From positions 62,001-126,000 of the IMG/VR virus record IMGVR_UViG_3300046536_000256: a DNA stretch of 64,000 nt. One strand, 5' to 3'. A program made the position numbers and the translations under genes. The notes beneath the pieces are model-generated. The model did no database searches. It was given only the letters and a program-made list of their open reading frames with translations, and was not told the origin of the DNA. Numbering within the stretch: the first letter of the stretch is position 1; each line of letters opens with the position of its first letter. Positions 11,540-47,557 of the stretch are shown in pieces.

Positions 11540-13723
11540 TTAGGCGTTTGGGTCGGTGTCCGGTACGTTAGCACCGGCGTTGCCGATATTGTCAACAACA
11601 ACGCGCTGAGAAGCCAGCTTCGACAGCAGACCTTCGTCACCCAGGAAGTCATGGGCGTCGGTGATGGTCAGCGAGCCGATGATTGGGTTCAGAGCCCAGT
11701 GCTTGTAGATCGGGAGGGTCATGACCACACCGAAGTCCTGCTGGTCACGAGTGACGTTGCCTTGGACCAGGATGTTTTCCTTGGACACGTTCACGCCGAT
11801 ACCGCCCAGAGGGTTGATGGTGTCGTTGGTGGAGGTGTTCTTCGGAACGATCAGGATTTGACCGATCTGCGAGTCGAAGTTGGTTTCGACTACGTTCAGG
11901 CTTTGCTTCGGACCAGTGGTACGAGCGTCGCCGGAGCGCATTACGAAACGGCTGAGGTTCTGGTGAACAACAACGGTCCACTCGATGTTGCCGTCAGTGC
12001 CGCCGTATTCAGCGATCGCAGCCAGACCCGACTTGGTGTTCAGGGCAGCAGTGATGTCGCTGATTTCGTTGGTGATGGCTGCGCAGACAGCGTCGAAGAC
12101 ACCCGAGGAGTCGATCGACGAAACTACGTCCTTCAGAGTGATCGCACGGTTAACTGCGGACGCAGTAACGAAGTGCTGACCGGCCAAGGTGTTGGAACCT
12201 TGGTTGTTGCCCACGACTGGGGAACCGTCGATGGAGGTGATGTACTTCAGGTGATCTTGAGCCTTGTCGAACGCGTTACGCGAGCACTGGTTGTTGATCA
12301 CGATGGACATCTGCTGGATTGCGAAGTCCAGGGAAGCCTGGTTGACGTCGTCCTTGCTGATCGGGTATTTCACCGACACTGGGGAGCGGCGCTGTACCGA
12401 CAGATGCTTGCGGGCATCGAACACTTCGATGCGATAGCCGAAGTTGCCACGGCTGGTGTTGGAAACGTTGAAGGTAGGCTTCATCGCCACAACGGTGCCG
12501 AGGCTGAACGAACGGATCAGCGCTTTCTGAGTGTCATCAGCTTTGCCGATGGTGATCAGGCTGCCAGTGGTCAGGTCGCGCAGAGCGTGAACTTCGGCAG
12601 TACCGGCGTTCAGGCGCAGTTCGTTGCCTTGACGCTGGTAGTTACCAGAAGCCGAGACGTTCAACATTGGCTCGTAGCCAGCGGTTTTGAAGCTAGCGAA
12701 AATGGTTTCGCCGACTTTCACGCCGTCTTTGTCTTCAACCGAGAAGCCTGGCAGAATGCGCAGGTGCATGTTGAGCATGCGATCGTCGGACGATTGACCG
12801 TTGGCGGTTGGGCCGAAGGTGTTGTTCGACATCGACTTGGTGTCGATGAAGAAGGTAACGGCGTTGGCGCCGATTTTGCCACCCAGAGCCATGGTGCGGA
12901 TGCTGATGGAGTTCGATTCGATTTCGTCGGTCGAAGTCCAAGGGCGCTGGCCAGGAACTTGGGTCAGACCCAGAAGGTTCGGTACGGTAACCGGAACAGT
13001 CAGGAACTGAGTTTTGTGAGCGCTACGGCCGTAGGCGTCGCCTTCGGAGTAGGTGGCGTTGGTTGGAGCAACCAGGCCGGCATCAGCGAACAGGGAACGA
13101 GTGTCGTCACCAGCGTCAGCTGGGTACACTGGCCACAGAGCCAGCACTTCGTCTTTGAACATTTCGCCGGAACGCAGCAGACCGAAGATCGGACGCAGCT
13201 CGGAAGCCGACTGCCATGCACTGTTGCCGTAGGCATAAGTGCCCAGACCAGCGGCACGTACGACCATTTCAGCGCCTTCATCTTCGTACTTGACGGAGAT
13301 GGTGGTGAAAAGTGCCTCAGCCGCAGGCGTTTGCAGGTGAGACTGGGCGTTGAGGGTCATGTTCGCAGCTTTCAGGTCAGCCTGATCGCCTTTGAAGTTT
13401 TGCATCGAGAAGCCTTCCAGACCTTGGATAGACTTCAGGCCAGCTTCGGCCTCGCCGAACAGGGACAGCGCTTCGCCTGGAACGCCGCTACGGCCTTTGG
13501 CGCCCATGAAAGCGTCGTACGCGCCGGGAGTCAGGACTTTCAGGCTCTTGCCGAGGGTGGCGCCTTCAGTGCCAGCAACCCCCATCATTTGCGATTGGAA
13601 AGTGTCGAAGCTCTCGTTACCCGAGAAGGTAGCCAGCGCGTTGTTGTTCACCAGCGATTCGCGGATAGCGTGGAACAGGTTGTTCTCCGGCTTCAGCGCT
13701 GCCGTCAAAATTTTCTTAGCCAT
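11540..13723 (-). CDS. Major capsid protein (phiKZ gp120-like)
   Basis: 727 aa with strong codon bias; propeptide carries G-x-E sites (SGNE, AGTE, QGLE|GF); Q..AAEALF motif; lies beside gp119-like and DnaB genes. Confidence 0.9.
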   Translation of the reverse strand: MAKKILTAALKPENNLFHAIRESLVNNNALATFSGNESFDTFQSQMMGVAGTEGATLGKSLKVLTPGAYDAFMGAKGRSGVPGEALSLFGEAEAGLKSIQGLEGFSMQNFKGDQADLKAANMTLNAQSHLQTPAAEALFTTISVKYEDEGAEMVVRAAGLGTYAYGNSAWQSASELRPIFGLLRSGEMFKDEVLALWPVYPADAGDDTRSLFADAGLVAPTNATYSEGDAYGRSAHKTQFLTVPVTVPNLLGLTQVPGQRPWTSTDEIESNSISIRTMALGGKIGANAVTFFIDTKSMSNNTFGPTANGQSSDDRMLNMHLRILPGFSVEDKDGVKVGETIFASFKTAGYEPMLNVSASGNYQRQGNELRLNAGTAEVHALRDLTTGSLITIGKADDTQKALIRSFSLGTVVAMKPTFNVSNTSRGNFGYRIEVFDARKHLSVQRRSPVSVKYPISKDDVNQASLDFAIQQMSIVINNQCSRNAFDKAQDHLKYITSIDGSPVVGNNQGSNTLAGQHFVTASAVNRAITLKDVVSSIDSSGVFDAVCAAITNEISDITAALNTKSGLAAIAEYGGTDGNIEWTVVVHQNLSRFVMRSGDARTTGPKQSLNVVETNFDSQIGQILIVPKNTSTNDTINPLGGIGVNVSKENILVQGNVTRDQQDFGVVMTLPIYKHWALNPIIGSLTITDAHDFLGDEGLLSKLASQRVVVDNIGNAGANVPDTDPNA

Positions 13724-23400: not shown

Positions 23401-23410
23401 GCAGAGCTCC

Positions 23411-23899: not shown

Positions 23900-23903
23900 G
23901 TGA

Positions 23904-24956
23904 TCAGCCTTTATTAATGGTGGCGTTCAGAACCGACTGAGCCGCGAAGATAGATTTGTAGACAGCGGTCTGCAACATCTTCAGGTTACCCATGACAACA
24001 CGCACGGTAGCCTGGACCTCATTGGCCGCCGCAGTGAACTGCTTGGTCCCGTTTACATCGATGTTCTTGTTGAAGTCCATCAACGAGTTAAGAGACTTCA
24101 ACGACACGCGTTCGATGTGCATGGATGTTTCCAGCATGCTGTCTGCTGCCTTTAACAGGGCCTTCTGCTTGGTGAGCAAGTGGAGTACCTGACTTTGATC
24201 CGTTTTGAATTTAGGGTTCTTGCCCTGAAGCGGAGGATCGGGAACTTCTTTCAACTTACCGTGGCCGTCCATCTGGAAGTCCACACGGCCGTAGAGCGTG
24301 CTTGGGGTATTCAGTTTCTCGATGGCCAGCGCATTCTGTGCCGCAACCAGCAAAGCGTCATGCTCTTTCTTAACAGCGCCAGCACCGTCATCGTTAACCT
24401 TCTGGAAACCAGCCTCGGTGATGGCCTGGCAGCCCTTCTTCATGACCTCGATGTAGTCCTCGATCTTCTTGACCGCTTTCTCACAGTCGCCCAGAGCACT
24501 GTCCATCCAACCCAGGTTGGCGGCCGGGATACCGGTTTTGTTGTAGATGTCGCCGAAGCCGAGAGGGTAAGGAATCTCATCGGTGTTCACACCATGCTTG
24601 TCGATGCTCAATTCCAAGCTTACCGACTTACGCCCGGCAATCTCTTTCTTACCAGTAAAGAAAGAGAACAGCCATTTAAAGAAATCTTTCACCGACTGTA
24701 TAACGGCACTCAGGCCTTTCTTGATGCTGTCCATGAAACCAGCTTCGTTACCCGAGACGACGTCAATACTGGGAAGCGAGATGTGAGAGAAGACAGCCTT
24801 GTAGAACTCTTCGTTCCCGCTGACCGTGTCGTACTCGCGGGAGAGGGCGATTACCGTGTCGTCGTCAACGGCCTGATCGTACCCTTTCTTATCCTCGTTG
24901 TATTCCTCCAACAGAGTTGGGGTATTGATGAAACGAGGACTATCGCTAATGGACAT
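23904..24956 (-). CDS. Internal head protein
   Basis: Two VSGNE sites followed by GFMDSIKKGLSAVIQSVKDFFKWLFSFF. Confidence 0.75.
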   Translation of the reverse strand: MSISDSPRFINTPTLLEEYNEDKKGYDQAVDDDTVIALSREYDTVSGNEEFYKAVFSHISLPSIDVVSGNEAGFMDSIKKGLSAVIQSVKDFFKWLFSFFTGKKEIAGRKSVSLELSIDKHGVNTDEIPYPLGFGDIYNKTGIPAANLGWMDSALGDCEKAVKKIEDYIEVMKKGCQAITEAGFQKVNDDGAGAVKKEHDALLVAAQNALAIEKLNTPSTLYGRVDFQMDGHGKLKEVPDPPLQGKNPKFKTDQSQVLHLLTKQKALLKAADSMLETSMHIERVSLKSLNSLMDFNKNIDVNGTKQFTAAANEVQATVRVVMGNLKMLQTAVYKSIFAAQSVLNATINKG

Positions 24957-25029
24957 AAGGAAACCCCTTGTCTGTGGTTAATAGAACATGCCTATAGCAT
25001 CCCCTAAATATCGAAATGCGGCATAAAGG

Positions 25030-25062
25030 CTAAACGCCCAGGGAAGAACCCAGGGCGTTTAG
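25030..25062 (-). terminator. Hairpin terminator with TTTATGCC tail
   Basis: ctaaacgccc...gggcgtttag. Confidence 0.7.
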
Positions 25063-25093
25063 TTTCTTTACGTCAGCAACCTAACCGCGAGGG

Positions 25094-26344
25094 TTAGATG
25101 TGTGCAGCAACAGCGTCCAGAGTCCAGCTGGCGCAACGCAGCATGTACTTGTGGGTCTGCTGAGTAACGGAAGCCGAAGTGGCGTAGATCGCACGAACCA
25201 GCGCAACCTGCTTGTTCACTTCGTCGGCTTTCTCTTTGTCGTCAGCTTTCACGACGTTGAGGGTGCCGATGACTTGGTCACGCTGAGCCTTGGAGAAGGC
25301 CTGTGCGGTTTTGTTGCCGCGGAACGCAGTGATGTCGGATTTGATCGACGTCAGGATGCGGGACAGCTCGCCTTTGTCAGCTTTAGGAGCCGACTCGCCG
25401 CTGGTCAGCTTCTTCACGTCGCCTTGGCCGAAGAAGATCTTGATGGAGCGAGCCATTTCGGCAGCTTCACCCAGGTCTTTCGCAGCGCCAGACTTCATCT
25501 CGGCGTGAACGCGCAGGCCGGCGTATTGACCGATCAGCACTTTCTTGTCGCCTTCCGATTTCTCGCCAGCTTCCAGGTCTTTCTTGGCGTCAGCAGCAAT
25601 TGCCGAAGTCAGAGCCGCGTAGGCAGTGTTGAACTTGCCCACTTCGATGCTGGTTGGCTTGCTGGCCACTTCAGCGAACTTGTCCAGCGCGGTACCAGTA
25701 GCGTCCCAGCCGTCCATGCCAGCTTTCAGGCCGTGCTTCTCGTAGTCGAACATGGCGTTCCAGCCGCCCAGCTTGACTTTCTCTTTCAGCTTGTCGGCGG
25801 CAGCCAGACGAGTGGAGAGTTGTTCCTGGCGACGGACCAGCTTTTCGATCTGCGAGAAGACGCCGACGAAGAAGTTGATCACGGTGTTGAAGATGTGCTT
25901 GATGACTTCGATGGCTTTCTTGGCGTAACCTTTGACGGTCTCCATGAAGCCTTCCATGCCATTGCGGGCCATGATCTGAGCGGTAGCCGCGTCGGACATG
26001 GATTCAACACCGCAGCGCTCGATGGACTGGCCGCCGAGTTTGGTGTTCAGCTTGGCCGCACGGTTGTACATGTTGGCGAAAGCGGTGGAGTTGAACGAGC
26101 CGGAATTGATCAGGGATTCCAGGCCTTCAACAACTTCCTGGATTTCTTCAACGGCTTCGTCCTGCTGCTTGACTTCTTCACGCAGCTCTTCGATTTCCTG
26201 GGAAACTTGTTCCAGGGTCACAGCGACTTCGGCGACTTCAGCGCGGACCGAATCTTCGGCGCCAACTTCAACAGCTTCAACAGGCAGCGTGCCGCCGTTC
26301 AGTTCCAGTTCTTCGAAACCGGCGTAGCGAGTCAGAATGCTCAT
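25094..26344 (-). CDS. Abundant internal head protein (phiKZ internal-protein family, gp93-like)
   Basis: Glu-rich propeptide with AGFE, EGLE, CGVE and NGME sites followed by an amphipathic helix; very strong codon bias. Confidence 0.8.
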   Translation of the reverse strand: MSILTRYAGFEELELNGGTLPVEAVEVGAEDSVRAEVAEVAVTLEQVSQEIEELREEVKQQDEAVEEIQEVVEGLESLINSGSFNSTAFANMYNRAAKLNTKLGGQSIERCGVESMSDAATAQIMARNGMEGFMETVKGYAKKAIEVIKHIFNTVINFFVGVFSQIEKLVRRQEQLSTRLAAADKLKEKVKLGGWNAMFDYEKHGLKAGMDGWDATGTALDKFAEVASKPTSIEVGKFNTAYAALTSAIAADAKKDLEAGEKSEGDKKVLIGQYAGLRVHAEMKSGAAKDLGEAAEMARSIKIFFGQGDVKKLTSGESAPKADKGELSRILTSIKSDITAFRGNKTAQAFSKAQRDQVIGTLNVVKADDKEKADEVNKQVALVRAIYATSASVTQQTHKYMLRCASWTLDAVAAHI

Positions 26345-26392
26345 GCTTTTGTATCCTTCGTTAACGAAATGATTTGGTTTGTTTATAAACAG

Positions 26393-27370: not shown

Positions 27371-27388
27371 GTCCCACCTCGTCCTTGA

Positions 27389-28708
27389 TTAAGGAGTGTT
27401 GACCTTGATGGAAGTGTGGCAGAGTTCAACCAGACCGGCGATGATCAAGACCAGGTAGCTGTTCACCGCAACGCGGATGTTCAGCAGTTCCATTTGGTTC
27501 TTCCGCACCAAGGCAGAGAACGTAGTCAGGAGCTTGTCCTTCAGCTCATCGCTGATGTCGGATTCAAAGAACCCTTTGGTGATGTCGGAGTAATCCGATT
27601 CACCCAGCTTGAACTTCTCGCCGCCGTCGAAGACCTTACGCCATTCTTTCAGCACGTCACGCAGCAGCTTAATCACGGCCTTGATCTGTTGCGAAGACAG
27701 GGACTTGATTTCCAGGTCCAGCTTCGGGTAGATCATCGGAGCCGAGTTATCGAAGCCGGTCGTGTCGATGTCGAGGAAACGGGTCACGAAGTCTTCAACC
27801 TCACCGATCGATTTGGTAGCCCGACCGCTGTTGTTCTGACGAATGTCGACGAAGTAGGCGCCGCCCATCAACTCAACCGACTGCTTAGCCGTGGCTGCCG
27901 CCACCGAATGCTGAGGGCACGGGTAGGTGCACTCTTTGAAACGTTCCGACGGGATAGACACACCCAACAGCATGAAACGTTCTTCGGCTTCTGCCTGAGA
28001 CTTGCCTGCAAAGCCGCCAAAGTAGCTCAGGGTGGCGTTGAGGCTGTTACGGTTGTTCAGGTAGTAGTTCTGACTCAAACCCGACAGAGAGCGGCTCAGC
28101 TTGCTCAGGTCTTCAACCCAGTTCTCGCTGACCTTACCGTTTACCTTGAACAGGTTAAACAAACGGTTGCCCAGCAGAATCTTCTCACGGTCCTTTTCGA
28201 ACGGTGGAGAAGTGCTGATTGAGTTTTCCAACAAGTCCACCGACGCTTCCAGGGAGTCCTGGCTTTGGGTGAACAAGATGTAAGCCTCTTTGAAGCCTGT
28301 GCCCATCTGGGAGATGATCTGGCGTGACTTCTTGAAGAAGTCTTCCATGAAGCTCTCACAGCCTACCAGACGGGTGAGCAGGTAGTCCTTCGGCATCAGA
28401 GAACGACCCAGTGCCTCAAAGCCCTCCACCGAGTCAACACCTTCAACCGGAGGGATTTCAACTTCAGACCGCTCCAGTTGCGCATCCATGACTTCCGCCA
28501 AGGAGGGAGTGACTTCATGCGCCTTGAGGGCTTGCAGGGTGTCCTTCACGGACTGAACACGATCTTTCGAGTTGTCCAGTTCGTTCTGGTAACGGTTGAG
28601 GTCACCAGAGTTCGCGGCGCTAGCTACGATTTCCGCAGACGTCACCACGTTAATGGCGGCCATCTCAGCCGCCAGCTTTTCGTTTGCAAGTACCTCAGGA
28701 CTAGCCAT
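27389..28708 (-). CDS. Internal head protein (gp92-like)
   Basis: EGFE and VGCE sites; RLFNLFKVNG and SVELMGG motifs. Confidence 0.7.
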   Translation of the reverse strand: MASPEVLANEKLAAEMAAINVVTSAEIVASAANSGDLNRYQNELDNSKDRVQSVKDTLQALKAHEVTPSLAEVMDAQLERSEVEIPPVEGVDSVEGFEALGRSLMPKDYLLTRLVGCESFMEDFFKKSRQIISQMGTGFKEAYILFTQSQDSLEASVDLLENSISTSPPFEKDREKILLGNRLFNLFKVNGKVSENWVEDLSKLSRSLSGLSQNYYLNNRNSLNATLSYFGGFAGKSQAEAEERFMLLGVSIPSERFKECTYPCPQHSVAAATAKQSVELMGGAYFVDIRQNNSGRATKSIGEVEDFVTRFLDIDTTGFDNSAPMIYPKLDLEIKSLSSQQIKAVIKLLRDVLKEWRKVFDGGEKFKLGESDYSDITKGFFESDISDELKDKLLTTFSALVRKNQMELLNIRVAVNSYLVLIIAGLVELCHTSIKVNTP

Positions 28709-31203: not shown

Positions 31204-31230
31204 GTTAACCTCTCCAAGAAGGAATAATTT

Positions 31231-35231: not shown

Positions 35232-35240
35232 TTGCAAACA

Positions 35241-35288
35241 TAACCCCCACCCATGCCTTCCTTAACGGGGGCATGGGTAGGGAGTTAC
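35241..35288. terminator. Bidirectional terminator between convergent genes
   Basis: acccatgcctt...ggggcatgggt; minus-strand tail TTATGTTTGC. Confidence 0.75.
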
Positions 35289-36026
35289 TTACATCGTTAC
35301 TTCACGGTTGTCCGTCATGTCAACGAAGTTTTCCAGGTACGCGGCAAACAACAGCGAGAGTTCCGTGACCGCACCCAATGTACTGGAGCGCCAATCAACA
35401 TCGCCCAAACTGAGGCTGTATTTGTACGGGAAGTTTTCTTCGATAAACTTAGCGTGAGCCTTGTCCACCAAGTTTGGGATGTTCTCCAGGAACAGGTAGT
35501 CACCGTTTTCAACGCTTTCCACGGAAGGGCTAAGGTCACCCCATTGCTTTGGGTCAGGATCCAGCAACTGCGTTTTGATCTCGTACACGCCCCAATTAAC
35601 AAAGCCCATGTAACGAGACACCTGAGCTTTGAGGGTGTTGAGAGTGAACGCCGCATCCTGACACGCCAGGTTCTTCGAGTTGATGTCATCCAGGATGGCC
35701 TGAACCTTCTCGGAGATGTACACCCCGGCAGCCTCAAAGTACTTCTGGGCTTGTTCCGTAGCGATGGTATCGCTGATGCGCTTGTCGAGACCTTTGTTCA
35801 GGATGACCTGACCGTTCTCTTTCGGGAAGCTGTCGAACAGTCGGAGTTTGATTTCCGACGCTTCGCGCACAGGCCAGAAACGGTTAGCGACTTCACAAGC
35901 TTCCTTGTAAGAGACGCCTTCCTGGAGCTGTTTAACCAGATCCTTCATCGCAGCGGTGGAGTTGGTCATCTCGGCGTGCGCCGCGTTACGCAGCTCAACG
36001 AGTTGAGTCAAGCAAATGTCGGTCAT
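35289..36026 (-). CDS. Hypothetical, probable virion protein
   Basis: 245-aa ORF coupled to an upstream head-protein gene. Confidence 0.65.
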   Translation of the reverse strand: MTDICLTQLVELRNAAHAEMTNSTAAMKDLVKQLQEGVSYKEACEVANRFWPVREASEIKLRLFDSFPKENGQVILNKGLDKRISDTIATEQAQKYFEAAGVYISEKVQAILDDINSKNLACQDAAFTLNTLKAQVSRYMGFVNWGVYEIKTQLLDPDPKQWGDLSPSVESVENGDYLFLENIPNLVDKAHAKFIEENFPYKYSLSLGDVDWRSSTLGAVTELSLLFAAYLENFVDMTDNREVTM

Positions 36027-37552
36027 ACCATTTTCCCCCAGCCAGTTTGTTTGGAGAAGTTATTCAGCGTGGTTTTAACACCACCGAAGTCGTTCTTGAT
36101 GATGGTCTCAACGACCGCGGCATTCTTCTCGCCGAAGGTCTTTGCGTCCGCTTCTTTGATGAACACCATGTCGCGAGCGTAGGCGTAACCTTCCGAGTCA
36201 CCGAAACCAGCATGACCTTTAGCCCGTGCCTGCATCACCAGGTTCGCCGCTGTCTCTACTTCGCCCAACAGGCCGTTGTAGTAGTAGGCGTGCGCGCGGT
36301 TGTACCAGTCCGCCAAGTTAGATGCCTGGCGTTCAACGATCAACAGCGATTGCGAGATGCTGTAACAGAACTGAGAGAAGTTCCGTACGTCCGCGGCCAT
36401 CACCTGATACATCTGAGCCAACGCCGGGTAATTGTAGAAGCCAGCAATCTCATTGATCTTGTCGGCCTCACCCTTGTCGATTACCGAAGCCAAGTCCTTA
36501 AAGTTGATCTTGGACAGGTCAGCGGTGTTCTCGGTGATTTCAATGTACCGCGTGTTGAGCGCCTGGATGCTGTGCAGGATAGTCGAGACATCCTGTTTTC
36601 TCACCTTAACCATCTCGGTGACCACAGTCTCCTGGATCTTCTTGCGGCAATTGCTGAAGCCGCTCTGAAGCTCGTCGTTGCTGAACTTGATGTTGTACAG
36701 TGTTTCATACAACTTGCTGACCAAGCTGGCCACAACGTCGACATCAAGGCCCAGCACCACTTCGTTAATCTCCTTGGTCAGGCGGTTAACTTCAGGGGAC
36801 ATACTCACCGAGGTCTGCAACGCAGGGTTACCGGCACGCACACGGGTCTTGGTGTATTCCTTGCTAATCAATGCCTTAAGCGATTGATTGTTCTTGGCCA
36901 CCTTGTCCGTGATCTGACCCAGCTTAGCCATCGCCTGTTGCAGCAGTGGCATGGCTTCGATCAGACTGTCAATGGCGCCTTGGTCCGTTTCGAACTTGCT
37001 CTTCAGCAGGGTCAGCTGCGCGATCCGGTCCTGGTTAGGCGGCAGGTTCATCAGGAAGTTTTCGAGGTTGTATTCACTGGCGGGGAAACCCAGGCCACTG
37101 AGTACAGTAACGAACTCTTGCTTCAGTTTACCCAGGTCGTCGTTGATCGCCTTGTTGATACGGGCGCTCTTACGGAAACCAAAGATCCCTTTCACCGTGT
37201 CGACCACCCAGTCCACCGCCATGCGGATGTACTTGATGATGTTCTCGATAAAAGCCTTGAAGCCATCCTTAATAGCGCTGAAGAAACCTTCCTGACCAGC
37301 ACGGGCATTACGCTCAGACGGGAACGGGTCGTAGTTCTCGTGGTTTGCCAGTTTGAAGTGAGCCGCTACACGCTTGGAGAACTTACCCAGTTGCATGCTT
37401 TCAATGCCGCTGACCATGACGGTTGCATCGTCTTGCTGGGTTTCTTTGTAGTACTCGGTCAAATCAACGCGTTGTTTGCTGGTGCCCGGCTCATACGAAT
37501 CGTCCGGGTGACCAGTGGCGATCTGTTTGTATGTGTCCAGGTAATCACTCAT
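36023..37552 (-). CDS. Internal head protein (long helical/coiled coil)
   Basis: Start MSDYLD; SGIE and AGQE sites followed by GFFSAIKDGFKAFIENIIKYI. Confidence 0.7.
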   Translation of the reverse strand: MSDYLDTYKQIATGHPDDSYEPGTSKQRVDLTEYYKETQQDDATVMVSGIESMQLGKFSKRVAAHFKLANHENYDPFPSERNARAGQEGFFSAIKDGFKAFIENIIKYIRMAVDWVVDTVKGIFGFRKSARINKAINDDLGKLKQEFVTVLSGLGFPASEYNLENFLMNLPPNQDRIAQLTLLKSKFETDQGAIDSLIEAMPLLQQAMAKLGQITDKVAKNNQSLKALISKEYTKTRVRAGNPALQTSVSMSPEVNRLTKEINEVVLGLDVDVVASLVSKLYETLYNIKFSNDELQSGFSNCRKKIQETVVTEMVKVRKQDVSTILHSIQALNTRYIEITENTADLSKINFKDLASVIDKGEADKINEIAGFYNYPALAQMYQVMAADVRNFSQFCYSISQSLLIVERQASNLADWYNRAHAYYYNGLLGEVETAANLVMQARAKGHAGFGDSEGYAYARDMVFIKEADAKTFGEKNAAVVETIIKNDFGGVKTTLNNFSKQTGWGKMV

Positions 37553-37958
37553 GGCGGCCCACCAGTTCGGCCAGCAGGAATTCAACCAGCACGCTGAACT
37601 CTTCGTTCTGAGTGATGTCCACGCCTTCGGTACCCTCGACCACGACCACAGTGGTGAAAGGTTCAGGCAGACGGCCCTTGGTGATCAGTGCAGCACGCAG
37701 GGAGGCCATGCGGTACTTGACGGTTTCGAAAACAAACGGACCGTTGATCGGCGAGATTTTGTTCCAGCGGTCCAGTTGTTCCCAGACAGCTTGTTCTTCG
37801 TCAATGCTCAGGCCGATGCTCGAGCTGAACTTGAAGTGCTTGCGGATGATGGCGGTGGCGTAAGGTTCCAGAGCAAACTTCGCCAGTTGTTCAGGGCAGG
37901 TGATCCCCAAGCTGATCAGTTTGTTCTTGTAGTCGGCAACATGCGGCAAATGAGACAT
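37545..37958 (-). CDS. Small hypothetical/virion protein
   Basis: Start MSHLPH with an AGGAG SD. Confidence 0.65.
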   Translation of the reverse strand: MSHLPHVADYKNKLISLGITCPEQLAKFALEPYATAIIRKHFKFSSSIGLSIDEEQAVWEQLDRWNKISPINGPFVFETVKYRMASLRAALITKGRLPEPFTTVVVVEGTEGVDITQNEEFSVLVEFLLAELVGRHE

Positions 37959-37986
37959 GGTAATGCTCCTAATTAGTGGGGGTGTT

Positions 37987-39468: not shown

Positions 39469-41250
39469 ATGGAACCAAATAGCTCACCCATAATTGCTAA
39501 AGTGTGCAAACATGCCGCTCAGTCGATTAATCGTTTTGACAAAAGTAAAGATTTGCTGTGTGCCAAGATCACCAATATTCATGAAGATGGCTCACGCTCC
39601 AATTCGCTGATAGCCCTTGAGAATTACAAGACGCCTATCTGGATCGTTAAGGAAGATAAGCGTAAGTTCAAACAGCACAAAGATTACATCGAAGAAACCA
39701 TGTGCAAAGAGTACAAGGTACCTCGTTGTCAGTTGGCCGCCGCAATCAACAAGTTCTATTATGGCCGGGTTGATAGCTCTTATGACATTCGTCAGGCTAA
39801 GAACAACCCCCACGTATTCGGGTTAGACCAAACCCCTCCAGTTCACTTCAAACGCAAGTACTTTGAGCGTTACGGCGACCATCAGGAAACTGAGGCTTAC
39901 AGCTTAGCGGCTTACGACGTTGAAGGCGACATGTTCAAGAAGGGCGTGCCGGTCATGATGGCCTCGGTAACCTTCAAGACCAAAGCCTACTTCGCAGCCT
40001 GCCGTGGTTGGTATTCGGAGAAGGCTGGTAAACGCTTAACCGATGCCGAGATCCTCAATGGCTTGAAGGAAGCCGAATACGCTCACTTGTCGGGACACCT
40101 TAAACGTCGTAACTGTACTGTTGAGTATGAACTCTTCGATACAGCCGGTCAGGTAGTTAAAGCGTGCATTGACAAGATGCATACGTGGCAGCCAGATTGG
40201 GTAGCCGCTTGGAACGCAGCTTACGACATGCAGGCTAACGAAGATGCATTGTTGGCTGACGGTTACAACTTGGCCGACGTGTATTCCGATCCGAGCATTC
40301 CAAAAGAGTACCGGTCGTATAAGTTTCACCCGGGTCGCACACACAAGCATAAAGAAGATGGCACGAAGATGCCGTTGGAATGGCAAGAGCGTTTCCCAAC
40401 GATTCGCACCATGGCCACTTGGCAAATGGCGGACGCTGGTTCGTTCTACGCGATTAAGCGGCAGCCGGTTGAAGGTAAGCTTCAGGATACGTCGTTACAA
40501 GGCATTGCTACAAAAGAAGACGTGCCAGGCAAGCTGTACACCGCAGAAGGCGCTGAGCAAGGTGTAGGGTCGCCGCAGTGGCACCGTTACATGCAGAAGA
40601 ACTTCCCGTACATCTACTCCATGTACAACATCTGCGATAACTTTGTAATTGAAGAGATCAATGAGAAGACCAGTGACTTCAGTCTCTCGTTACCGATGCT
40701 GTTGAAATACTCGGAATACTTCAACTACGTCTCTCAGCCAAGCATGATCTCGGATACCCTGTCGTTCATGGCAAGAGAGCGTGGGTTTGTGTGGGGGTCG
40801 ACTCCAAGCAACCGGGATAAACAGTTCTCTGAGAAACTCCCAACTCTGGGCGATTGGATTGCGTTGCTCGATACTGAGAAGAACGCCTCGTTTGGTAAAC
40901 CGTTGTTTGCGGGTCTGGACGATGTGTTCAGTAACGGTCGAACAGATACGTCAGACATTGACGTGGAAGGTGCATACCCAACAGCTACACTGGCATTGAA
41001 TGCCGGGGGTAAGACGACCATGGCAGAGGTCTACGGGATTCAGGGCGCAGACCCCATGAAGTTCCGGGAGATCGCGGTGAACTATGCCAGTAGTACGCAG
41101 GCTAACGCATTCGGGTTGTGTCATGACCTGTTCCGTTTCCCTGCCCCTAAAGATCTGAAGAAGGTCTTTGAAGCGGCATTGATTGCACAAGGCAAAGAAG
41201 AAGAACTGAAGAAACTGCAAGAAAACGAAGCAATGAAAAGAGCCGCCTAG
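39469..41250 (+). CDS. Split family-B DNA polymerase, exonuclease-containing half (gp82-like)
   Basis: ExoI YDVE, ExoII WNAAYD, ExoIII YNICD and a motif-A-like DIDVEGAYP near the C-terminus. Confidence 0.85.
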   Translation: MEPNSSPIIAKVCKHAAQSINRFDKSKDLLCAKITNIHEDGSRSNSLIALENYKTPIWIVKEDKRKFKQHKDYIEETMCKEYKVPRCQLAAAINKFYYGRVDSSYDIRQAKNNPHVFGLDQTPPVHFKRKYFERYGDHQETEAYSLAAYDVEGDMFKKGVPVMMASVTFKTKAYFAACRGWYSEKAGKRLTDAEILNGLKEAEYAHLSGHLKRRNCTVEYELFDTAGQVVKACIDKMHTWQPDWVAAWNAAYDMQANEDALLADGYNLADVYSDPSIPKEYRSYKFHPGRTHKHKEDGTKMPLEWQERFPTIRTMATWQMADAGSFYAIKRQPVEGKLQDTSLQGIATKEDVPGKLYTAEGAEQGVGSPQWHRYMQKNFPYIYSMYNICDNFVIEEINEKTSDFSLSLPMLLKYSEYFNYVSQPSMISDTLSFMARERGFVWGSTPSNRDKQFSEKLPTLGDWIALLDTEKNASFGKPLFAGLDDVFSNGRTDTSDIDVEGAYPTATLALNAGGKTTMAEVYGIQGADPMKFREIAVNYASSTQANAFGLCHDLFRFPAPKDLKKVFEAALIAQGKEEELKKLQENEAMKRAA

Positions 41251-41257
41251 CAGCCAT

Positions 41258-41297
41258 ACCCTCACCCATTCCCCTTTGTCGGGGAATGGGTGAGGGT
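41258..41297. terminator. Bidirectional terminator
   Basis: accctcacccattcccc tttgtc ggggaatgggtgagggt. Confidence 0.85.
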
Positions 41298-41310: not shown

Positions 41311-42303
41311 TTACTTCACGTAGTTGGTTTTCAGCCAGTTACTGAATTTGACGCAGTCACTAATGGCGTCTTCCAGGTACTGGTTGAGTTTGACCAGTGC
41401 TTGCAGGAACTCTTTACCAGCGGCCAAATCGCTCTTAAGCTTAGGGAGTTCCTTGTCATTCTTCTTGGTAGCCTTGACACGTTTCTCCAGATCGCTGATC
41501 GCGCTTTGCAGGTTGCTTTTGATACGGTCCAGCGGAACACGCGCATCCTTCATACGACCTAGGTACTTCTTGACCTCGAACTGGCTCTCGAGTGCTTTAA
41601 CAAAGCCGTCAATCGAGATGGCCTTGCGGAGTACCTTGTCTCGATCAACGTGTTCCATTTTGCCCAAGGCGATGTGCAGCTCGTCGTGAAGATTTTCGAA
41701 AGTAGTGCCTTTATACTTCCCTTCTTCGGACGGGTCGGCGATGGCGGTCAGCTTCTGGCTGGTGCGCTCGGCTTTGTCGACCAAATCGCTAAGCTCAGCG
41801 CGGCGCTTACCATTCATAGCCTCCCATTCTTCTTCTTCCTTCTTCCACTTAGCGTCACGTTCCGCTTTCTTCTTGGCCGCTTCCTCGTCGTCAGCCTTGT
41901 TTTCAGCCTTATTCTTGGCGATTTGGTCATCAAGTTCTTGATGACGCTTCTTCATTTCCTCGGCGTTACTTTCAACGCGAGTAATGGCGGCGGTTTCTTT
42001 CTTGGCAATCGCATCGTCGCTGCTACCGAAGAAGAAGTTCCAGATTCCCTTGAAGAGCTTGGCGATGAAATCCCAAACAGCCTGAAGACCATTGCCGATC
42101 GCCCCGAAGAAGCTCTCGTTACCAGCAACTCGTTCAGCACGAGAGAGCGCGCCATCTGCTTCCAGGATGGAGTAAACGTAAACCTGAGCAGGCACCAGGG
42201 AATAACTTTCCGAACCGTTCAGCCGATCCAGAGAAGCTGTCAAAGCATCGAAAGCCATACCAACGTGGCCTGCGTCCGAAACACCGTAATCTTCATTGCT
42301 CAT
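41311..42303 (-). CDS. Internal head protein, tandem paralog 3
   Basis: Shared propeptide with NGSE and AGNE sites, followed by SFFGAIGNGLQAVWDFIAKLFKGIWNFFF. Confidence 0.75.
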   Translation of the reverse strand: MSNEDYGVSDAGHVGMAFDALTASLDRLNGSESYSLVPAQVYVYSILEADGALSRAERVAGNESFFGAIGNGLQAVWDFIAKLFKGIWNFFFGSSDDAIAKKETAAITRVESNAEEMKKRHQELDDQIAKNKAENKADDEEAAKKKAERDAKWKKEEEEWEAMNGKRRAELSDLVDKAERTSQKLTAIADPSEEGKYKGTTFENLHDELHIALGKMEHVDRDKVLRKAISIDGFVKALESQFEVKKYLGRMKDARVPLDRIKSNLQSAISDLEKRVKATKKNDKELPKLKSDLAAGKEFLQALVKLNQYLEDAISDCVKFSNWLKTNYVK

Positions 42304-42319
42304 GATGTAACCTCGTGAA

Positions 42320-43411
42320 TTAAGCGTGCGCCATACCGAACAGGCGCATGATGGTTGTACTGATCTGCTTCAGGCCTTCATCGCAGGTTTCAATCTGCTT
42401 GGCCAGGCGGGTGGTCAGACTCAGGAAGATCTTGCACGCGGTCAGGTCCTTACGGAACTGGGCTTCTTCGGCCGAGTTCCCTCGTTTACCAGCGATAGCG
42501 ACTTGCTTCTCGAGCAGCTTGACCTTGCTGATAATCGGACCCTTCTGCGCCACGATGAACAAACGCTGACCACCTAGGTCAGTGTGCAGCATACGCGTGA
42601 TGATAGTCTGCGCCGCGATTGCATCTTTGAGGTTGTGGATCCTCGAGAACTCAGCGATGTCGAGCCCATTGGAATCTTGCAGGTCGGTGTGGAAGCTGTG
42701 GTACATCGACTCGAATTCAGTACCCGCGAACTGAGCAGACTCGTCCTTCATCACCATGGTGTTGAAGTCTTCGGTGATCTTGTTCACCCGGGTTACCTGC
42801 TCAATCAGGTGTTGCTTCTGACGGCGGTTCAAACGACCAACTGCTTCGGCGACTTCCTTAACAGCGTGGGCTTTTTCGGCAGGTGTGGGGTGCTCGGGGA
42901 CCTTGTCGATAATAGCTTTCACCTGAGCGGCTTCGGCAGGCGTTGCGTCAGAGGACCCCATGAACTTATCCAGGGCCTCAACACTATCGATGTGTGCCAT
43001 CTTTGTCCAAGTGGCGTCGGTTGTCGGCGTAGGCTTGGCTACCAGCACGCTGGAGAGGGAATCCGCGTTGACCTTGACCTTGATCTCGGTCTTCTTGGTC
43101 TTCTGCTCAGCAGAGTTCTCCGAGGTGCCAAAGAAGAAAGAGGAGATGCCATTGAACATCTTCATGATGTAATTCCAGATGGCTTTCAAACCATCCCCAA
43201 TTGCACCAAAGAAACTTTCGTTACCATCCACCTTCTGCTGGTGGGTGAGGTCGTCGCCAGCGCCCAGTACTGCAAAGGCGTATTGCTGAGCCCGCGTCAA
43301 CCCAAAGCCTTCGCTGCCGGTAACACCGTCGAGGGTGTCGGTGATAGCTTCGAACATGAGTTCCAGGTGTTCAACACCAGCAACACCGTAATCTTCTTGT
43401 ACATCATCCAT
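42320..43411 (-). CDS. Internal head protein, tandem paralog 2
   Basis: TGSE and DGNE sites, followed by SFFGAIGDGLKAIWNYIMKMFNGISSFFF. Confidence 0.75.
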   Translation of the reverse strand: MDDVQEDYGVAGVEHLELMFEAITDTLDGVTGSEGFGLTRAQQYAFAVLGAGDDLTHQQKVDGNESFFGAIGDGLKAIWNYIMKMFNGISSFFFGTSENSAEQKTKKTEIKVKVNADSLSSVLVAKPTPTTDATWTKMAHIDSVEALDKFMGSSDATPAEAAQVKAIIDKVPEHPTPAEKAHAVKEVAEAVGRLNRRQKQHLIEQVTRVNKITEDFNTMVMKDESAQFAGTEFESMYHSFHTDLQDSNGLDIAEFSRIHNLKDAIAAQTIITRMLHTDLGGQRLFIVAQKGPIISKVKLLEKQVAIAGKRGNSAEEAQFRKDLTACKIFLSLTTRLAKQIETCDEGLKQISTTIMRLFGMAHA

Positions 43412-43447
43412 GGTGGATTCCCCAGTTAAGCAAATATAAAGGAATAG

Positions 43448-43477
43448 GCCGGGATAACCTTTTACAGTTATCCCGGC
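43448..43477 (-). terminator. Hairpin terminator
   Basis: gccgggataac...gttatcccggc. Confidence 0.7.
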
Positions 43478-43487
43478 TTAACGGTTG

Positions 43488-44555
43488 TTACAGGCAGAAC
43501 ACGCGCTTGGTGGCCTTTTTCAAGGTCAAGATGTCTTCGACGCTGGTTTTGACGTGGTGAGCGAAGCCGCTGCAATACGCCAGGATCACGCGCAGTTGAC
43601 CCAACAGAGTCGTTGCGGTTTTGTTTTCGGCGGTGGACTCTTTCAGCTGTTTCTCGCACTCGGCGATTTGCTTGGAGATGGTGTTCTTCTGATCGTTCAT
43701 CGCCTTGACCGCTTTCTTGGCCTCGTCGATGTCGTTGATCATCGCCTGAGCAACGCTCTTGGCTTTGTTCAGATCGCCCAGCTCTTTGATTTCTTCCAGC
43801 TGGTCCAGGAATTTCTTGCTGGCCGTGATGAACGGGTTCATCTTCTGGAACATTTCCCAAGCCAGACCGTGTTCAGCCCCGCCGACCATGGACTTCTTCT
43901 TGGAGTCTTCATGGAACGCCAGGAGTTTGGTCAGCTTGTCAACAATGCGCTGGACAGCCTTGACGAAAGCGGCTTGGCCATCTTTGTTGAACTTCGGCGC
44001 TTCATGGCCGATCATCAAGATGACTTCTTTCTGCTCGGCGGGAGTTTTGGCTTTCTTCTCGCGTTCCAGCAGGCTGTTGACGATGGTCAGTTCGGCGCCA
44101 GTGGCGGTTTGCGCGAGGGACTCGAGGCGACCTTTCATGGTGCTGATCTGGTCGGCGATTTCTTTCTCGCTACCCTTGCCGATCTCGTCGAGCTCTTTCT
44201 TGAACTCGGTGACGTCTTCTTTGGCTTTGTCGAGCAGAGCCGGGGCGTCACGGTTGAAGAAGAAACCCCACAGGCCTTTGAACATCTTGACGATGTATTC
44301 GTAGACCGATTTAGCGCCGGTGGCGATCGAACCGAAGAACGATTCGTTACCGCCGACCGAGCTGGCTTTGATAGCACCGCTGGCCATCAGAACGCCTTCA
44401 GCATAACGCTGAGCTTCGGTCAGACCAAAGCCTTCACTGCCGGTAACACCGTTGACAGTGTCGTCCAGTGCATCGAACATGATCTCGATGTGGGGACGGT
44501 CACTGACGTCAAAGCCTTCGTTTTCATCACCTGGAGCAATATCAAGAGGATCCAT
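43488..44555 (-). CDS. Internal head protein, tandem paralog 1
   Basis: TGSE and GGNE sites, followed by SFFGSIATGAKSVYEYIVKMFKGLWGFFF. Confidence 0.75.
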   Translation of the reverse strand: MDPLDIAPGDENEGFDVSDRPHIEIMFDALDDTVNGVTGSEGFGLTEAQRYAEGVLMASGAIKASSVGGNESFFGSIATGAKSVYEYIVKMFKGLWGFFFNRDAPALLDKAKEDVTEFKKELDEIGKGSEKEIADQISTMKGRLESLAQTATGAELTIVNSLLEREKKAKTPAEQKEVILMIGHEAPKFNKDGQAAFVKAVQRIVDKLTKLLAFHEDSKKKSMVGGAEHGLAWEMFQKMNPFITASKKFLDQLEEIKELGDLNKAKSVAQAMINDIDEAKKAVKAMNDQKNTISKQIAECEKQLKESTAENKTATTLLGQLRVILAYCSGFAHHVKTSVEDILTLKKATKRVFCL

Positions 44556-44615: not shown

Positions 44616-45272
44616 TTAAACGCTGGCGAGTTTGTTGAAGTACTGGGTGAGGTTGCGCTTGGCCTGAGGTTGCAGGCTGTTCGCCGCGTAGGTGATGTCG
44701 ATCAGCTTCTTCAGCTTGAAACGAACATTCCAGTTGATCGCGATTTTGGTCAGCACCTGCATGTACGACTGGTAGCTCTTGACGATGTCGTAGTACGGAC
44801 CTTTGTCCAGACCCACGGTAAAGCGGAACGCCAGACCATCGGTGAAGACCTGTTGGTTCGCACGGATCTGCTCCAGCAGGTAATCGGTAACGACCACGTA
44901 GCCTTCGAAATCCTGCTTCATCGAGTTACCGATCGTTTCAATGAAACTGATCTGCTCGGCGTTGCGCTCTTCAACGTTGTTGAAGCCTTCTTCGCCAGTC
45001 AAGTACTTCATGTGGCGATTGATGCGCGCGATCATGTCAGCAGTGACCAGGTTGCCTTTAGCGTTGAGCATTTTGCCCACGCCAATGACATCAGGGATCG
45101 GAGCCAGAGTAGGCTCTGCTGCTTTAACTTCAACCGCTGGAACTGGAGTCTTAATAACCGACGCCAGTGTTTGCACAGGGGCTTGTTTCGTTGGGGCGGG
45201 AACGACAGGCGCTTCAACAGCAGCACTCGTATCCTCTGTTTCTGGTTTAACGTATTCTTTATCGGTGCTCAT
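44616..45272 (-). CDS. Conserved hypothetical protein with a P/A/V-rich N-terminus
   Basis: Likely start MSTDKEY; helical C-terminal domain. Confidence 0.65.
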   Translation of the reverse strand: MSTDKEYVKPETEDTSAAVEAPVVPAPTKQAPVQTLASVIKTPVPAVEVKAAEPTLAPIPDVIGVGKMLNAKGNLVTADMIARINRHMKYLTGEEGFNNVEERNAEQISFIETIGNSMKQDFEGYVVVTDYLLEQIRANQQVFTDGLAFRFTVGLDKGPYYDIVKSYQSYMQVLTKIAINWNVRFKLKKLIDITYAANSLQPQAKRNLTQYFNKLASV

Positions 45273-45323
45273 TGAAAGGGCCCTTTCGTATGAGTAATAG
45301 GCAATATAGGACGTGATGTCATA

Positions 45324-45360
45324 GAATATCCCCAAGGAGCAAGGCCCCTTGGAGATATTC
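45324..45360 (-). terminator. Hairpin with TATG tail
   Basis: gaatatccccaagg...ccttggagatattc; minus-strand tail TATGAC. Confidence 0.65.
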
Positions 45361-45371
45361 GTAGACGTTTA

Positions 45372-45896
45372 TTACAGTTTCCCCATCCCTGCCTTTCTTG
45401 CCAACTCCAGAATTTCCTTCTCCTCTTTAGAGAGTCCAGCTTCCGGAGGTGTTGCATCGGCATCGGCTTTGGAACGTTGTGCTTCGCCCTCACTGATCGC
45501 CAGCACCAAGTCGTCCACTAAGAAAGCTGGTAGGTTCAGGTAGTCATGAAGGGGAATCACATCTTTCAACTTAGCCCGTCCGTAGTACTTACCAATGGCA
45601 TTAATCGACCACGGGTGTACAAACTCATTCTCCTTTTTAATGAAGGCAACTGAAGAATGCGGGTTAAGCTGAGATCGGTCGTAATACCCCATGTTGAAGT
45701 CATGCAGTATCCCCTCTTGGAAGTCCAACGACTCTGGTCGGTCCAGGTGTGTCGGAAGTCCAAGAAGGTTGTTGTTTACTACATGAAACTCATCGCTGAA
45801 GTGTCTCTCGAAATCTATTCCGAGATGGCTTCTTTGGTCGCGGCTGCCGCTTCGGCCGCTTGAGTCATCAGCTTCAACTGGGTAAGGGTAAAAAAA
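45372..45896 (-). CDS. Tail/baseplate assembly chaperone 'T'-like segment, probably reached by -1 frameshift from 45815..47557
   Basis: The frame is open from the T7 run at 45896-45890 to the stop at 45372; the annotated TTG start has no clear SD; contains YLNLPAFLVDDL. Confidence 0.7.
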   Translation of the reverse strand, partial: FFYPYPVEADDSSGRSGSRDQRSHLGIDFERHFSDEFHVVNNNLLGLPTHLDRPESLDFQEGILHDFNMGYYDRSQLNPHSSVAFIKKENEFVHPWSINAIGKYYGRAKLKDVIPLHDYLNLPAFLVDDLVLAISEGEAQRSKADADATPPEAGLSKEEKEILELARKAGMGKL

Positions 45897-47557
45897 GCCA
45901 TGAACGGGTCGATCGGGGTGTAGCCAAAACGACGGTCAGGGTCCTGGAACTCTTCGGTCCGCTTCTTGCACACCGGGCAGTGGTAGTTAGCCACAGCAAC
46001 GAAGGTGTGCGCCATCTGCGGCGATTTGTTCAGGATGAAGGCAGAGAGGGTCTTGTTCAGCTCACGGCTATCCAAGATCACGTCCATACAACCCTTGTTG
46101 AATTCGGACGCTTCACATTCCGAACGCTTCAACACCAGGTCTTCTTCGTCAGTACCCGGCGCGCCCACCGACACGTAGGTCTTGATCCAGTGCAGGAACT
46201 CAGTCGCACCCAGGGTAGTCAACAGCAGAGCGACCTGAGTCTTGAACTCTTTCTCGTCGATAACCTTGGAGCGAATTTCCTGGAGCTGTGGGTTGATACG
46301 ACCGGCGTAGTAGTCGTAGGTTTCGAACGCTTCAGCCATCGACGAAGGACCGACTTCGAAGTAGATCGACTTGTCAACGTTGTAGACCCGATTGCTTTCC
46401 AGGCCGTAGGTCGACTTCTCGATCATTTCCAGCGTCTGCTCAACGGTGTACTTCGCATTACCGTTGTACAGGTTGGCGTAGATCGCCGACTCTTCCGGAG
46501 TTTCGATGCTGTGACGCACACGCACCAGCTTGTCCGGATCACTGACCTGGAAGTCAGACCAGTCGCACTTGTCGTTCAGGCAACGCAGCTGGAGGTTGAC
46601 CCCGTGACTGTGGGTCGAGCGCAGCAGTGCCATGCAGATGGTGCCGAAGTCGCTGAACCGCACAACCTGAGACAGGTCCTTGAAGTCAACGATACCAGTG
46701 ACCGAACTGTTGACGATACGTGCCGCCAAGAAGTCCCAGACCACACGCATGCCAGCCATGACCGACAGAGTGACACTGTTACCGCCCACGGTACGCACGT
46801 AGCCTTTAACGGTACGGTTGATGTCGTTGACCAGCGCTGCCAGTTCCAGCTTGCTTGGACGGGTGAAGGTCAGCATGCAGTACGAATCACGCAGCAACAC
46901 GTCGAACTGGAATTCACCGTTCTCAGCACGCATCGAAGAACGACGCATTACTTCAGAAACAGAGAACCCTTTCGACGCACGACTTGGCTTCTTGCCCAGG
47001 ATGTCCGTGGTAACAATGTTGCTGCCACGGTCACTGACGTTGGAGATACCGTCTTCGTTCATGACCTTGGAACGGATCTTGATGCTGTCGACGTACTCTT
47101 CCATGAAACGGTAGAGGTCGCCGCAGATCTGCTCCATTTCTTCAGCAGTCTTGTCGGCGTGGCTCGCTTCCAAGTACTGAGCCCATTCGTTCTTGGTCGA
47201 CGCCAGCATGCCATCCGACGCTTGGCCTTGTTCGTGCAACGACTTCATTGCAGTCGTTTGCAGCCACTTGGACAGCAGGATGTTGGCACGCTCGTTGCAG
47301 TCACGAGAGTTACCCAAGAAGATCGGAAGGTAGCCGAGTTGTTTGTCCTCTTCAGTACCAGGACGAATCAACTCAGAGACCGAAGGCAGGATCTTCTTCA
47401 TCGGGGTGTTTTCAGCGGTGTGGGTTTCGCCGAAGCTGGCTTCTGCCACCGGAGCGGCTGGGGCCACTGGGACCACCGGCACTGGGGAGGCTTCAGCTGG
47501 ATCTTCCGCAACCCCGGCTTGCGTGGTGTTCGCCGGGTTGTTCTCTTGTTCACTCAT
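45815..47557 (-). CDS. Tail/baseplate hub assembly protein (T4 gp26-like chaperone)
   Basis: D...I..ALLRS...G......C....C and CPVC motifs; C-terminal ...DPFMAFF lies on a slippery run. Confidence 0.55.
   Translation of the reverse strand: MSEQENNPANTTQAGVAEDPAEASPVPVVPVAPAAPVAEASFGETHTAENTPMKKILPSVSELIRPGTEEDKQLGYLPIFLGNSRDCNERANILLSKWLQTTAMKSLHEQGQASDGMLASTKNEWAQYLEASHADKTAEEMEQICGDLYRFMEEYVDSIKIRSKVMNEDGISNVSDRGSNIVTTDILGKKPSRASKGFSVSEVMRRSSMRAENGEFQFDVLLRDSYCMLTFTRPSKLELAALVNDINRTVKGYVRTVGGNSVTLSVMAGMRVVWDFLAARIVNSSVTGIVDFKDLSQVVRFSDFGTICMALLRSTHSHGVNLQLRCLNDKCDWSDFQVSDPDKLVRVRHSIETPEESAIYANLYNGNAKYTVEQTLEMIEKSTYGLESNRVYNVDKSIYFEVGPSSMAEAFETYDYYAGRINPQLQEIRSKVIDEKEFKTQVALLLTTLGATEFLHWIKTYVSVGAPGTDEEDLVLKRSECEASEFNKGCMDVILDSRELNKTLSAFILNKSPQMAHTFVAVANYHCPVCKKRTEEFQDPDRRFGYTPIDPFMAFFTLTQLKLMTQAAEAAAATKEAISE

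Follow-up and report, generated by a model that had tools for sequence, protein, structure and literature searches.

Putative protease-processed internal head proteins encoded by an exchangeable tandem array of an EL-like jumbo phage

A tandem array of three paralogous genes was analyzed in a 64,000-nucleotide stretch of viral DNA (the window), which covers bases 62001-126000 of the 233,283-bp record IMGVR_UViG_3300046536_000256, a viral record with direct terminal repeats. The nearest named relatives of this jumbo phage genome are Pseudomonas phage EL and similar jumbo phages, with protein identity of about 30%, and judged from its proteins the phage is a giant one of the EL/phiKZ type, an EL-like chimallivirus distantly related to EL. 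The array occupies positions 41311-44555 of the window, on the minus strand, and is composed of exactly three open reading frames (ORFs), named A, B and C (Table 1). We propose, with a probability of roughly two in three (0.68), that A, B and C are precursors of internal head proteins of the ejection type, which would be packaged in the prohead, processed by the prohead protease and released with the DNA, and that they belong to an array exchanged between phages. Relatives carry one to three copies at the locus, and entire arrays differ between phages whose flanks are nearly identical, a feature not described previously.

The presence of three tandem paralogs with a conserved N-terminus of about 95 residues had been noticed in an earlier, sequence-only reading of the stretch, and it is confirmed here by the ORFs themselves, by a MAFFT alignment that reproduces the earlier consensus and by a search of the genome with copy A, which retrieved B and C at expectation values (E) of 4e-29 and 1e-26. 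The invariant residues include, in A numbering, H22, G39-S-E41, L45, A48-Q49, Y51, G69-N-E71-S-F-F-G75, K90, F92, G94 and F98-F-F100. Pairwise identity among the three proteins is 47-54% over the first 92-100 residues and 19-25% over the remainder, the leaders being, as had been claimed, more conserved than the C-terminal parts. All 39 homologs aligned have the glycine and the glutamate of both G-x-E sites, and among 143 cluster representatives each of these residues is conserved to at least 90%. Searched against 1.84 billion representatives, a profile of the leader retrieved 197 clusters (50% identity), and in nearly all of them the leader is N-terminal. Residues 72-101, the SFFG...FFF block, are the most hydrophobic segment of each of the three proteins, and in the structural model the block is predicted to form the first helix, placed at the new N-terminus of the mature protein after cleavage.

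Profile comparison indicates that the array leader is homologous to the propeptide module of the PF12699 (phiKZ_IP) internal head proteins. The family alignment of 39 sequences (A2) was compared by hhalign with an alignment of 21 orthologs (A3) of the genuine PF12699 protein of the window used as comparator, and columns 36-101 of A2 matched columns 75-166 of A3 with a probability of 89.8% (E 1.8e-6). Both G-x-E pairs are in register, G39-x-E41 with G74-x-E76 and G69-x-E71 with G129-x-E131. The maturation cuts of gp53 and gp54 of Salmonella phage SPN3US were mapped by mass spectrometry at AQE125↓GWKETLKDLFER and ARE137↓SLWDDIK (PMC10052503; here and below, arrows mark mapped or predicted cuts). 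When both proteins were added to A3, their cuts fell in the column of G-x-E131↓GFMETVKG, and hence, by extension, they match GNE↓SFFG of the array. The location proposed for the site in the earlier reading is supported by this alignment with cuts of the prohead protease, the gene for which is present in the genome. Likewise, the SFFG...FFF block is homologous to GFMETVKG...FFVG of the PF12699 proteins and to the mature N-terminus of SPN3US gp53, GWKETLKDLF; the arrangement typical of PF12699, in which an amphipathic helix comes after a propeptide containing S/A/G-x-E sites, is found in the array proteins.

The extent of the removable part was approached with an AlphaFold2 model built on the family alignment (predicted local distance difference test, pLDDT, 81.9; predicted template-modelling score, pTM, 0.77). 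In A, residues 1-19 and 65-74 are disordered (pLDDT <50), two short helices stand at either side of the first G-x-E loop, and a long helix starting at residue 77 runs into an all-alpha bundle up to residue 352. Since the GNE site lies in the low-confidence loop and the helix begins just after it, the removable part would comprise about 63-71 residues. Therefore, from the targeting leader that had been postulated, the module shared by differing bodies stands, whereas its extension to all 95 residues does not.

The enzyme that would cut these sites is encoded in the genome. A prohead protease similar to phiKZ gp175 (174428-175276 of the whole genome, minus strand) was found with 33% identity and an E of 2e-24, and only with phiKZ gp175 as query, a search of the genome with Pfam Peptidase_S77 giving nothing. 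The motif G.E[SG]F was counted 13 times, shuffled ORFs giving 2.9 +/- 1.6, and is almost confined to head proteins; its carriers are the capsid protein, the C-terminus of the protease, the PF12699 proteins and the array genes. A hidden Markov model (HMM) of the module finds at least seven carriers in the genome, proteins of the head block, and recovers both the array family and the PF12699 family. The phiKZ capsid protein is cut at E163 (PMC11297242), and the GLE↓GF site of the capsid protein of the window lies near the position aligned with that cut. Two further observations concern these proteins: five G-x-E motifs are gathered within the first 105 residues of the capsid protein, and the tail of the protease contains GLE↓SY, around residue 204, and GSE↓SF, around residue 247, both plausible sites of self-cleavage.

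The C-terminal parts, or payloads, had been described as strongly divergent and as sharing a helix pattern only. The divergence is real, but the payloads are homologous. Comparison of payload-only profiles by hhalign gave a probability of 96% over 233 columns for A and B, 90% for B and C, and 98% for A and a further clade, pE, while the homology of payload C to payload A is no longer detectable in this comparison. They are divergent versions of a single all-alpha domain whose size is constant, not assorted effectors. Hence, for A, B and C an exchange of unrelated domains was rejected as explanation, and unrelated payloads are found only between the array family, a distal fourth copy and PF12699. 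Protein length across clusters has a median of 344 amino acids (aa), with a 5-95% range of 273-378. BLAST detects the leaders in 96% of the pairs of the family and the payloads in 6%, and 113 of 150 payloads chain into one group. None of the 143 cluster representatives contains an enzymatic Pfam domain, the commonest weak match being PF12699. Diversified effectors had been predicted from the sequence; the locus is indeed strongly diversified, but structure prediction for A, of a kind that had been suggested as a check, yields an all-alpha bundle, and the payloads are one diverged domain instead of varied effectors.

Searches with the array model matched in fold only uncharacterised chimallivirus proteins, from Klebsiella phage Miami (template-modelling score, TM, 0.74) and Erwinia phage Joad (TM 0.73). 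Against the PDB, Foldseek gave a best E of 0.12, which is uninformative; VIA-align matched generic four-helix bundles with Z values up to 12.1, which for helical proteins is under the meaningful level; and sequence profiles retrieved designed or coiled helical proteins only. The shape search of the ESM Atlas did not exceed a TM of 0.36. Two or three of the representatives P0110-P0252 match apolipophorin-III/apolipoprotein Pfam models (best E 1.2e-8), and apolipophorin-III (1eq1) aligns to residues 88-355 of the array model with a Z of 9.1. This resemblance is a weak hint, in part model-based, of lipid-binding amphipathic bundles; homology to apolipophorin or apolipoprotein was set aside, and the likeness is treated as compositional or helical only.

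A, B and C match phrog_21850, the EL gp50-like family, which has no assigned function. Paralog A, with about 30% identity over 99% of the length of EL gp50, is its positional ortholog, and megablast of the array against named phages found no match. EL gp50 (YP_418083) is present in one copy between gp49 and the DNA polymerase gp51, and the gene order of the window follows that of EL gp46-gp56 with the array in place of the single gene gp50. In every complete related locus examined the genes are placed between the gp49-like gene and the convergent polymerase gene, as one copy in EL, L016, L017, L029 and L031-L033, two copies in L014/L015, L018/L027/L028, L019, L030 and L034-L037, and three copies in this window and in L012/L013. 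In the tree the genes cluster by position: A falls in the A-type clade, B groups with the second genes of related arrays, and C, a copy observed only here and in L012/L013, is sister to B on a long branch.

The exchange of arrays is apparent when L012/L013 are compared with L014/L015, four independent assemblies. Their flanks are 98-100% identical and their arrays wholly different, three genes versus two, with the break points in the spacers at both array ends; inside the swapped arrays only the leaders still align, with 75-87% nucleotide identity. For the proteins of L012 and L014, identity is 98-100% in the flanks, 82% in the A leader and 30% in the A payload. The comparison of copy number and of the ratio of nonsynonymous to synonymous substitutions (dN/dS) across relatives, which had been put forward as a check, gave, in close pairs, a dN/dS of 0.06-0.19 for the leader (synonymous divergence, dS, 0.7-1.5) and of 0.23-0.26 for the payload. 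Since these values are below 1, both parts are under constraint at the protein level. This pattern of exchange and fast divergence is typical of host-facing genes. Paralog A is 38% identical to its counterpart P0005 and the PF12699 protein of the window 75% identical to P0035, P0005 and P0035 probably coming from the same relative.

Indirect indications that such proteins reach the virion come from relatives. Erwinia phage RisingSun has nine module-bearing ORFs, and six of them, gp5, gp68, gp71, gp72, gp73 and gp189, are among the 31 phage proteins detected by tandem mass spectrometry after liquid chromatography (LC-MS/MS; hypergeometric P 1.7e-4). The best EL matches of RisingSun gp5 are gp165 and gp50, and the authors of the RisingSun study reported that the virion proteome of EL contained the homologs of gp5, gp189 and gp73 (PMC6034870).

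Several results weigh against the assignment of the array to internal head proteins. The hhalign match extends over no more than 66 columns, with a probability under 95%. Against PF12699, whose curated cut-off is 27 bits, A, B and C give no match at E <= 0.1, and 0/39 family members match at E <= 1. Payload profiles reach a probability of only 0.2-4.3% against PF12699 payloads, and the array model is all-alpha, whereas the PF12699 model combines helices with a beta-sheet at residues 260-307. The LC-MS/MS data of RisingSun were obtained from a crude lysate, and gp8, the closest full-length match, was undetected in them. The literature search on EL gp50 itself yielded no direct data; RefSeq calls gp50 hypothetical, but gives the nearby gp53 and gp54 as virion proteins. 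The difference from PF12699 is also seen in the BFVD, where the PF12699 model has 110 matches and the array model 5, and where the targets in common score TM 0.25-0.29 to the array model versus 0.57-0.75 to the PF12699 model. Regarding score, 7 of the 143 cluster representatives match PF12699 weakly (best E 2.8e-5), while the genuine PF12699 proteins of this genome reach 116-132 bits. Therefore, because of sub-threshold scores and unrelated payloads, the array proteins fall outside PF12699, the propeptide module being nonetheless common to both.

In the model that we favour, the propeptide of about 63-71 residues, made of a helix, a G-x-E loop, a second helix and G-N-E, would bring the protein into the assembling prohead, where, if phiKZ gp93 and gp162 are a guide, it may bind the core or the inner side of the shell. 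In phiKZ, the N-terminal pieces of gp93 and gp162 stay on the inner capsid surface after cleavage, and the helical parts, presumed components of the inner body (PMC11297242), are injected; gp93 enters the cell together with the DNA (bioRxiv 2024.03.24.586471). The gp175-like protease would then cut after the invariant glutamates, E41 and E71 in A, releasing all-alpha proteins of about 270-300 residues with the hydrophobic SFFG...FFF helix at the new N-terminus. The mature proteins would be stored with the DNA and probably exit the head with it at infection. The locus would grow by tandem duplication to one to three copies, with payloads diverging very fast under protein-level constraint and whole arrays being exchanged by recombination in the flanking spacers.

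The nearest competitor, possible though rather doubtful, accepts packaging and processing but regards the mature proteins as filler that acts only within the head, as inner-body, spacer or DNA-organizing material without a task in the host, so that divergence and exchange would reflect weak constraint. The tightly constrained length, the single all-alpha fold of the payloads and the lack of enzymatic domains among the representatives fit such a role, and the post-injection role of the PF12699 proteins is itself unknown (bioRxiv 2026.04.21.720040). However, the payload dN/dS in unsaturated pairs is well below 1, which argues that the sequence matters, and distinct payload types persist and are exchanged as units, a behaviour more typical of the host-facing T4 Ip1-3 (PMC12373910).

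It is quite unlikely that A, B and C are not virion proteins at all, the SFFG...FFF helix serving for membrane or compartment targeting inside the infected cell and the G-x-E sites being conserved for structural reasons. The hydrophobicity of the block would suit this explanation, as would the absence of direct virion evidence for EL gp50, but the same module is carried by genuine, high-copy PF12699 internal head proteins at a mapped cleavage site, the motif is common to the propeptide of the capsid protein and the tail of the protease, and in the order of LC-MS/MS retrieval the relatives from RisingSun come directly after the capsid protein and the principal internal head protein. Conservation of the leader for a DNA-level reason, as a recombination anchor or a regulatory element, has very little in its favour beyond the leaders being the sole alignable DNA inside swapped arrays: with the leader dN/dS and dS found, synonymous sites change freely while the protein is kept, and the boundaries of the swaps fall beyond the array, in intergenic spacers, instead of in the leaders. 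An improbable elaboration of the ejection model would be that proteolysis unmasks the SFFG...FFF helix on an apolipoprotein-like bundle, and that the ejected proteins open onto the lipid of the host inner membrane to build or coat the early vesicle or to engage membrane-associated defences. If this were true, the interchangeable arrays would be 'serotypes' matched to different hosts, and the leader could, in addition, serve directly as a tag with which foreign cargo is loaded into the heads of chimalliviruses.

The surroundings of the array correct part of its earlier description. The DNA polymerase neighbour is verified, but tail-chaperone genes are not: the left neighbours belong to PHROG families of unknown function without solved relatives, and that label is therefore unsupported. 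Neither the gp49-like protein nor the product of 45815-47557 has a PDB sequence match; the latter was also considered as a relative of phiKZ gp81 and rejected, the proteins being unrelated, and phiKZ gp83, which is convergent with the phiKZ polymerase gene, was rejected as an array relative for absence of similarity. Nor is the array away from the head genes, as had been stated, given that an internal-head-protein block (21997-39390), with the two genuine PF12699 proteins, the EL gp54-like virion protein and a homolog of SPN3US gp45, lies directly across the polymerase gene. The listed TTG start of the gp49-like gene gives 239 aa, while its relatives have about 200-226 aa, so the true start is probably internal, downstream of the TTG; at residue 114 the protein carries the motif G-E-E-G-F, and it may be a further substrate of the protease.

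Within the array, a hairpin follows A and only 16 nucleotides separate B from C, so A is perhaps transcribed partly apart from B-C, maybe at a different level. The hairpin between C and the polymerase gene, read from the letters, is probably a bidirectional terminator; it marks the right edge of the swappable segment, and the swap boundary of the relatives is in the same spacer.

Table 1. Array genes, their predicted processing elements and other features, in window coordinates.
Feature	Position	Strand	Details
Paralog A	43488..44555	-	355 aa ORF; phrog_21850 E 4e-38; adjoins gp49-like gene
Predicted propeptide of A, residues 1-71	44343..44555	-	tip, helix, G39-S-E41 loop, helix, G69-N-E71
Hydrophobic amphipathic block SFFG...FFF of A, residues 72-101	44253..44342	-	start of helix 77-123
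Paralog B	42320..43411	-	363 aa ORF; phrog_21850 E 4.6e-24
Predicted propeptide of B, residues 1-65, ending in GNE	43217..43411	-	
Paralog C	41311..42303	-	330 aa ORF; phrog_21850 E 4.9e-23
Predicted propeptide of C, residues 1-63, ending in GNE	42115..42303	-	
Terminator-like hairpin between A and B	43448..43477	-	12-bp stem, T-rich tail; consensus scan only
Hairpin separating the C end from the convergent polymerase gene	41259..41296	.	16-bp perfect stem, read from sequence
DNA polymerase part, right flank	39469..41250	+	phrog_3011 E 1.6e-182; flanks the array in every complete related locus examined
EL gp49-like gene, left flank	44616..45335	-	phrog_14374 E 1.4e-45; conserved flank
Major capsid protein	11540..13723	-	N-terminal GNE↓SF (35-39), GLE↓GF (101-105)
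Head-block protein with G-N-E + amphipathic-helix module	23904..24956	-	module HMM E 8.6e-8
Genuine PF12699 (phiKZ_IP) protein, comparator	25094..26344	-	Pfam 132 bits; invariant G129-M-E131↓GFMETVKG
Second genuine PF12699 protein	27389..28708	-	Pfam 116 bits
EL gp54-like virion protein (phrog_14541), module at residues 93-118	36023..37585	-	module HMM E 3e-7

Other carriers of the module and their neighbours deserve mention. The distal fourth paralog, outside the window (23150-24343 of the whole genome, minus strand), has 397 aa and only the leader in common with A, B and C; its payload opens with a K/E/A/S-rich low-complexity linker and has no detectable homology to theirs, and its matches in named phages are all confined to residues 3-104. 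The EL gp54-like protein has a weak N-terminal PF12699 match (23 bits). In the phrog_27616 family (window 21997-23400, minus strand; RisingSun gp73) the leader-like module is internal, at residues of about 200-300 instead of N-terminal, which suggests either a much longer propeptide or internal cleavage. At 37987-39390 (minus strand) a protein of 467 aa, EL gp52-like, shows homology (BLASTP E 1e-10) to gp45, a head protein of SPN3US; its HExxH motif (AIAHELGHVFGG) is kept in SPN3US gp45 (ILHEVGHVY), and around residues 300-350 it is hydrophobic over a long stretch. A head or ejection protein that resembles metallopeptidases and is embedded in the membrane is one possibility.

Chimalliviruses inject many proteins, and the roles of these in the first minutes, such as vesicle formation and protection of the incoming DNA, are an open question. 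The analysis defines a family outside PF12699 that would use the same propeptide and cleavage module, with precise predicted cleavage sites, at a locus that is an exchangeable hot spot between otherwise near-identical phages, as expected of host-facing genes. A defined leader of about 70 residues might suffice for cargo loading into these heads. Should the proteins be mere filler, the finding would be an ordinary extension of a known theme.

Among known systems, the direct family members are EL gp50, EL gp165 and phrog_21850, to which the array proteins match significantly by profile; the EL proteins are annotated only as hypothetical. EL has one gene at the locus versus three in this phage, and EL gp165 shares the leader, as does the distal fourth copy, whose relatives match over the leader only. 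In the EL segment L026 (166529-170424), gp165 is directly downstream of gp166, annotated as 'DarB-like antirestriction'. The Dar system of phage P1 likewise consists of head-packaged proteins delivered with the DNA, as we infer for the array; homology is absent and no DarB-like neighbour is found in this genome beside the distal fourth copy, so that the parallel serves as a lead only.

PF12699 includes phiKZ gp92-97, gp162 and gp163, SPN3US gp53 and gp54 ('paralog family A') and Goslar gp53-58. As these, the array genes are tandem paralogs in chimallivirus head-gene regions, with a copy number variable between phages, and their products begin with a propeptide that bears S/A/G-x-E sites and leads into an amphipathic helix, the module being homologous. 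They differ in the propeptide, of about 65-71 residues versus about 125-137, in the all-alpha payload, of a different fold and with a profile similarity below 5% probability, in their placement at a separate locus beside the DNA polymerase gene, and in their much faster evolution.

Each of the T4 internal proteins, once injected, inhibits a GmrSD restriction enzyme of its own (PMC12373910; PMC5694885). Like T-even Ip1-Ip3, the array proteins have a conserved N-terminal packaging signal, here a putative one, on divergent bodies, and the loci contain several copies and vary between close relatives, as L012 and L014 do. The signals themselves are dissimilar, that of T4 being a capsid-targeting sequence of about 10-20 residues cut by gp21 and that of the array a leader of 63-71 residues with two G-x-E sites; sequence relationship is absent, the array payloads are mutually homologous domains of about 270-300 residues, and no anti-restriction activity is known for the array proteins. 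The comparison with the polymorphic T-even Ip loci, already drawn from the sequence, is apt as a working analogy (PMC12373910). The array very probably encodes protease-processed internal head proteins, a new branch of those of chimalliviruses, working like the polymorphic ip loci of T-even phages.

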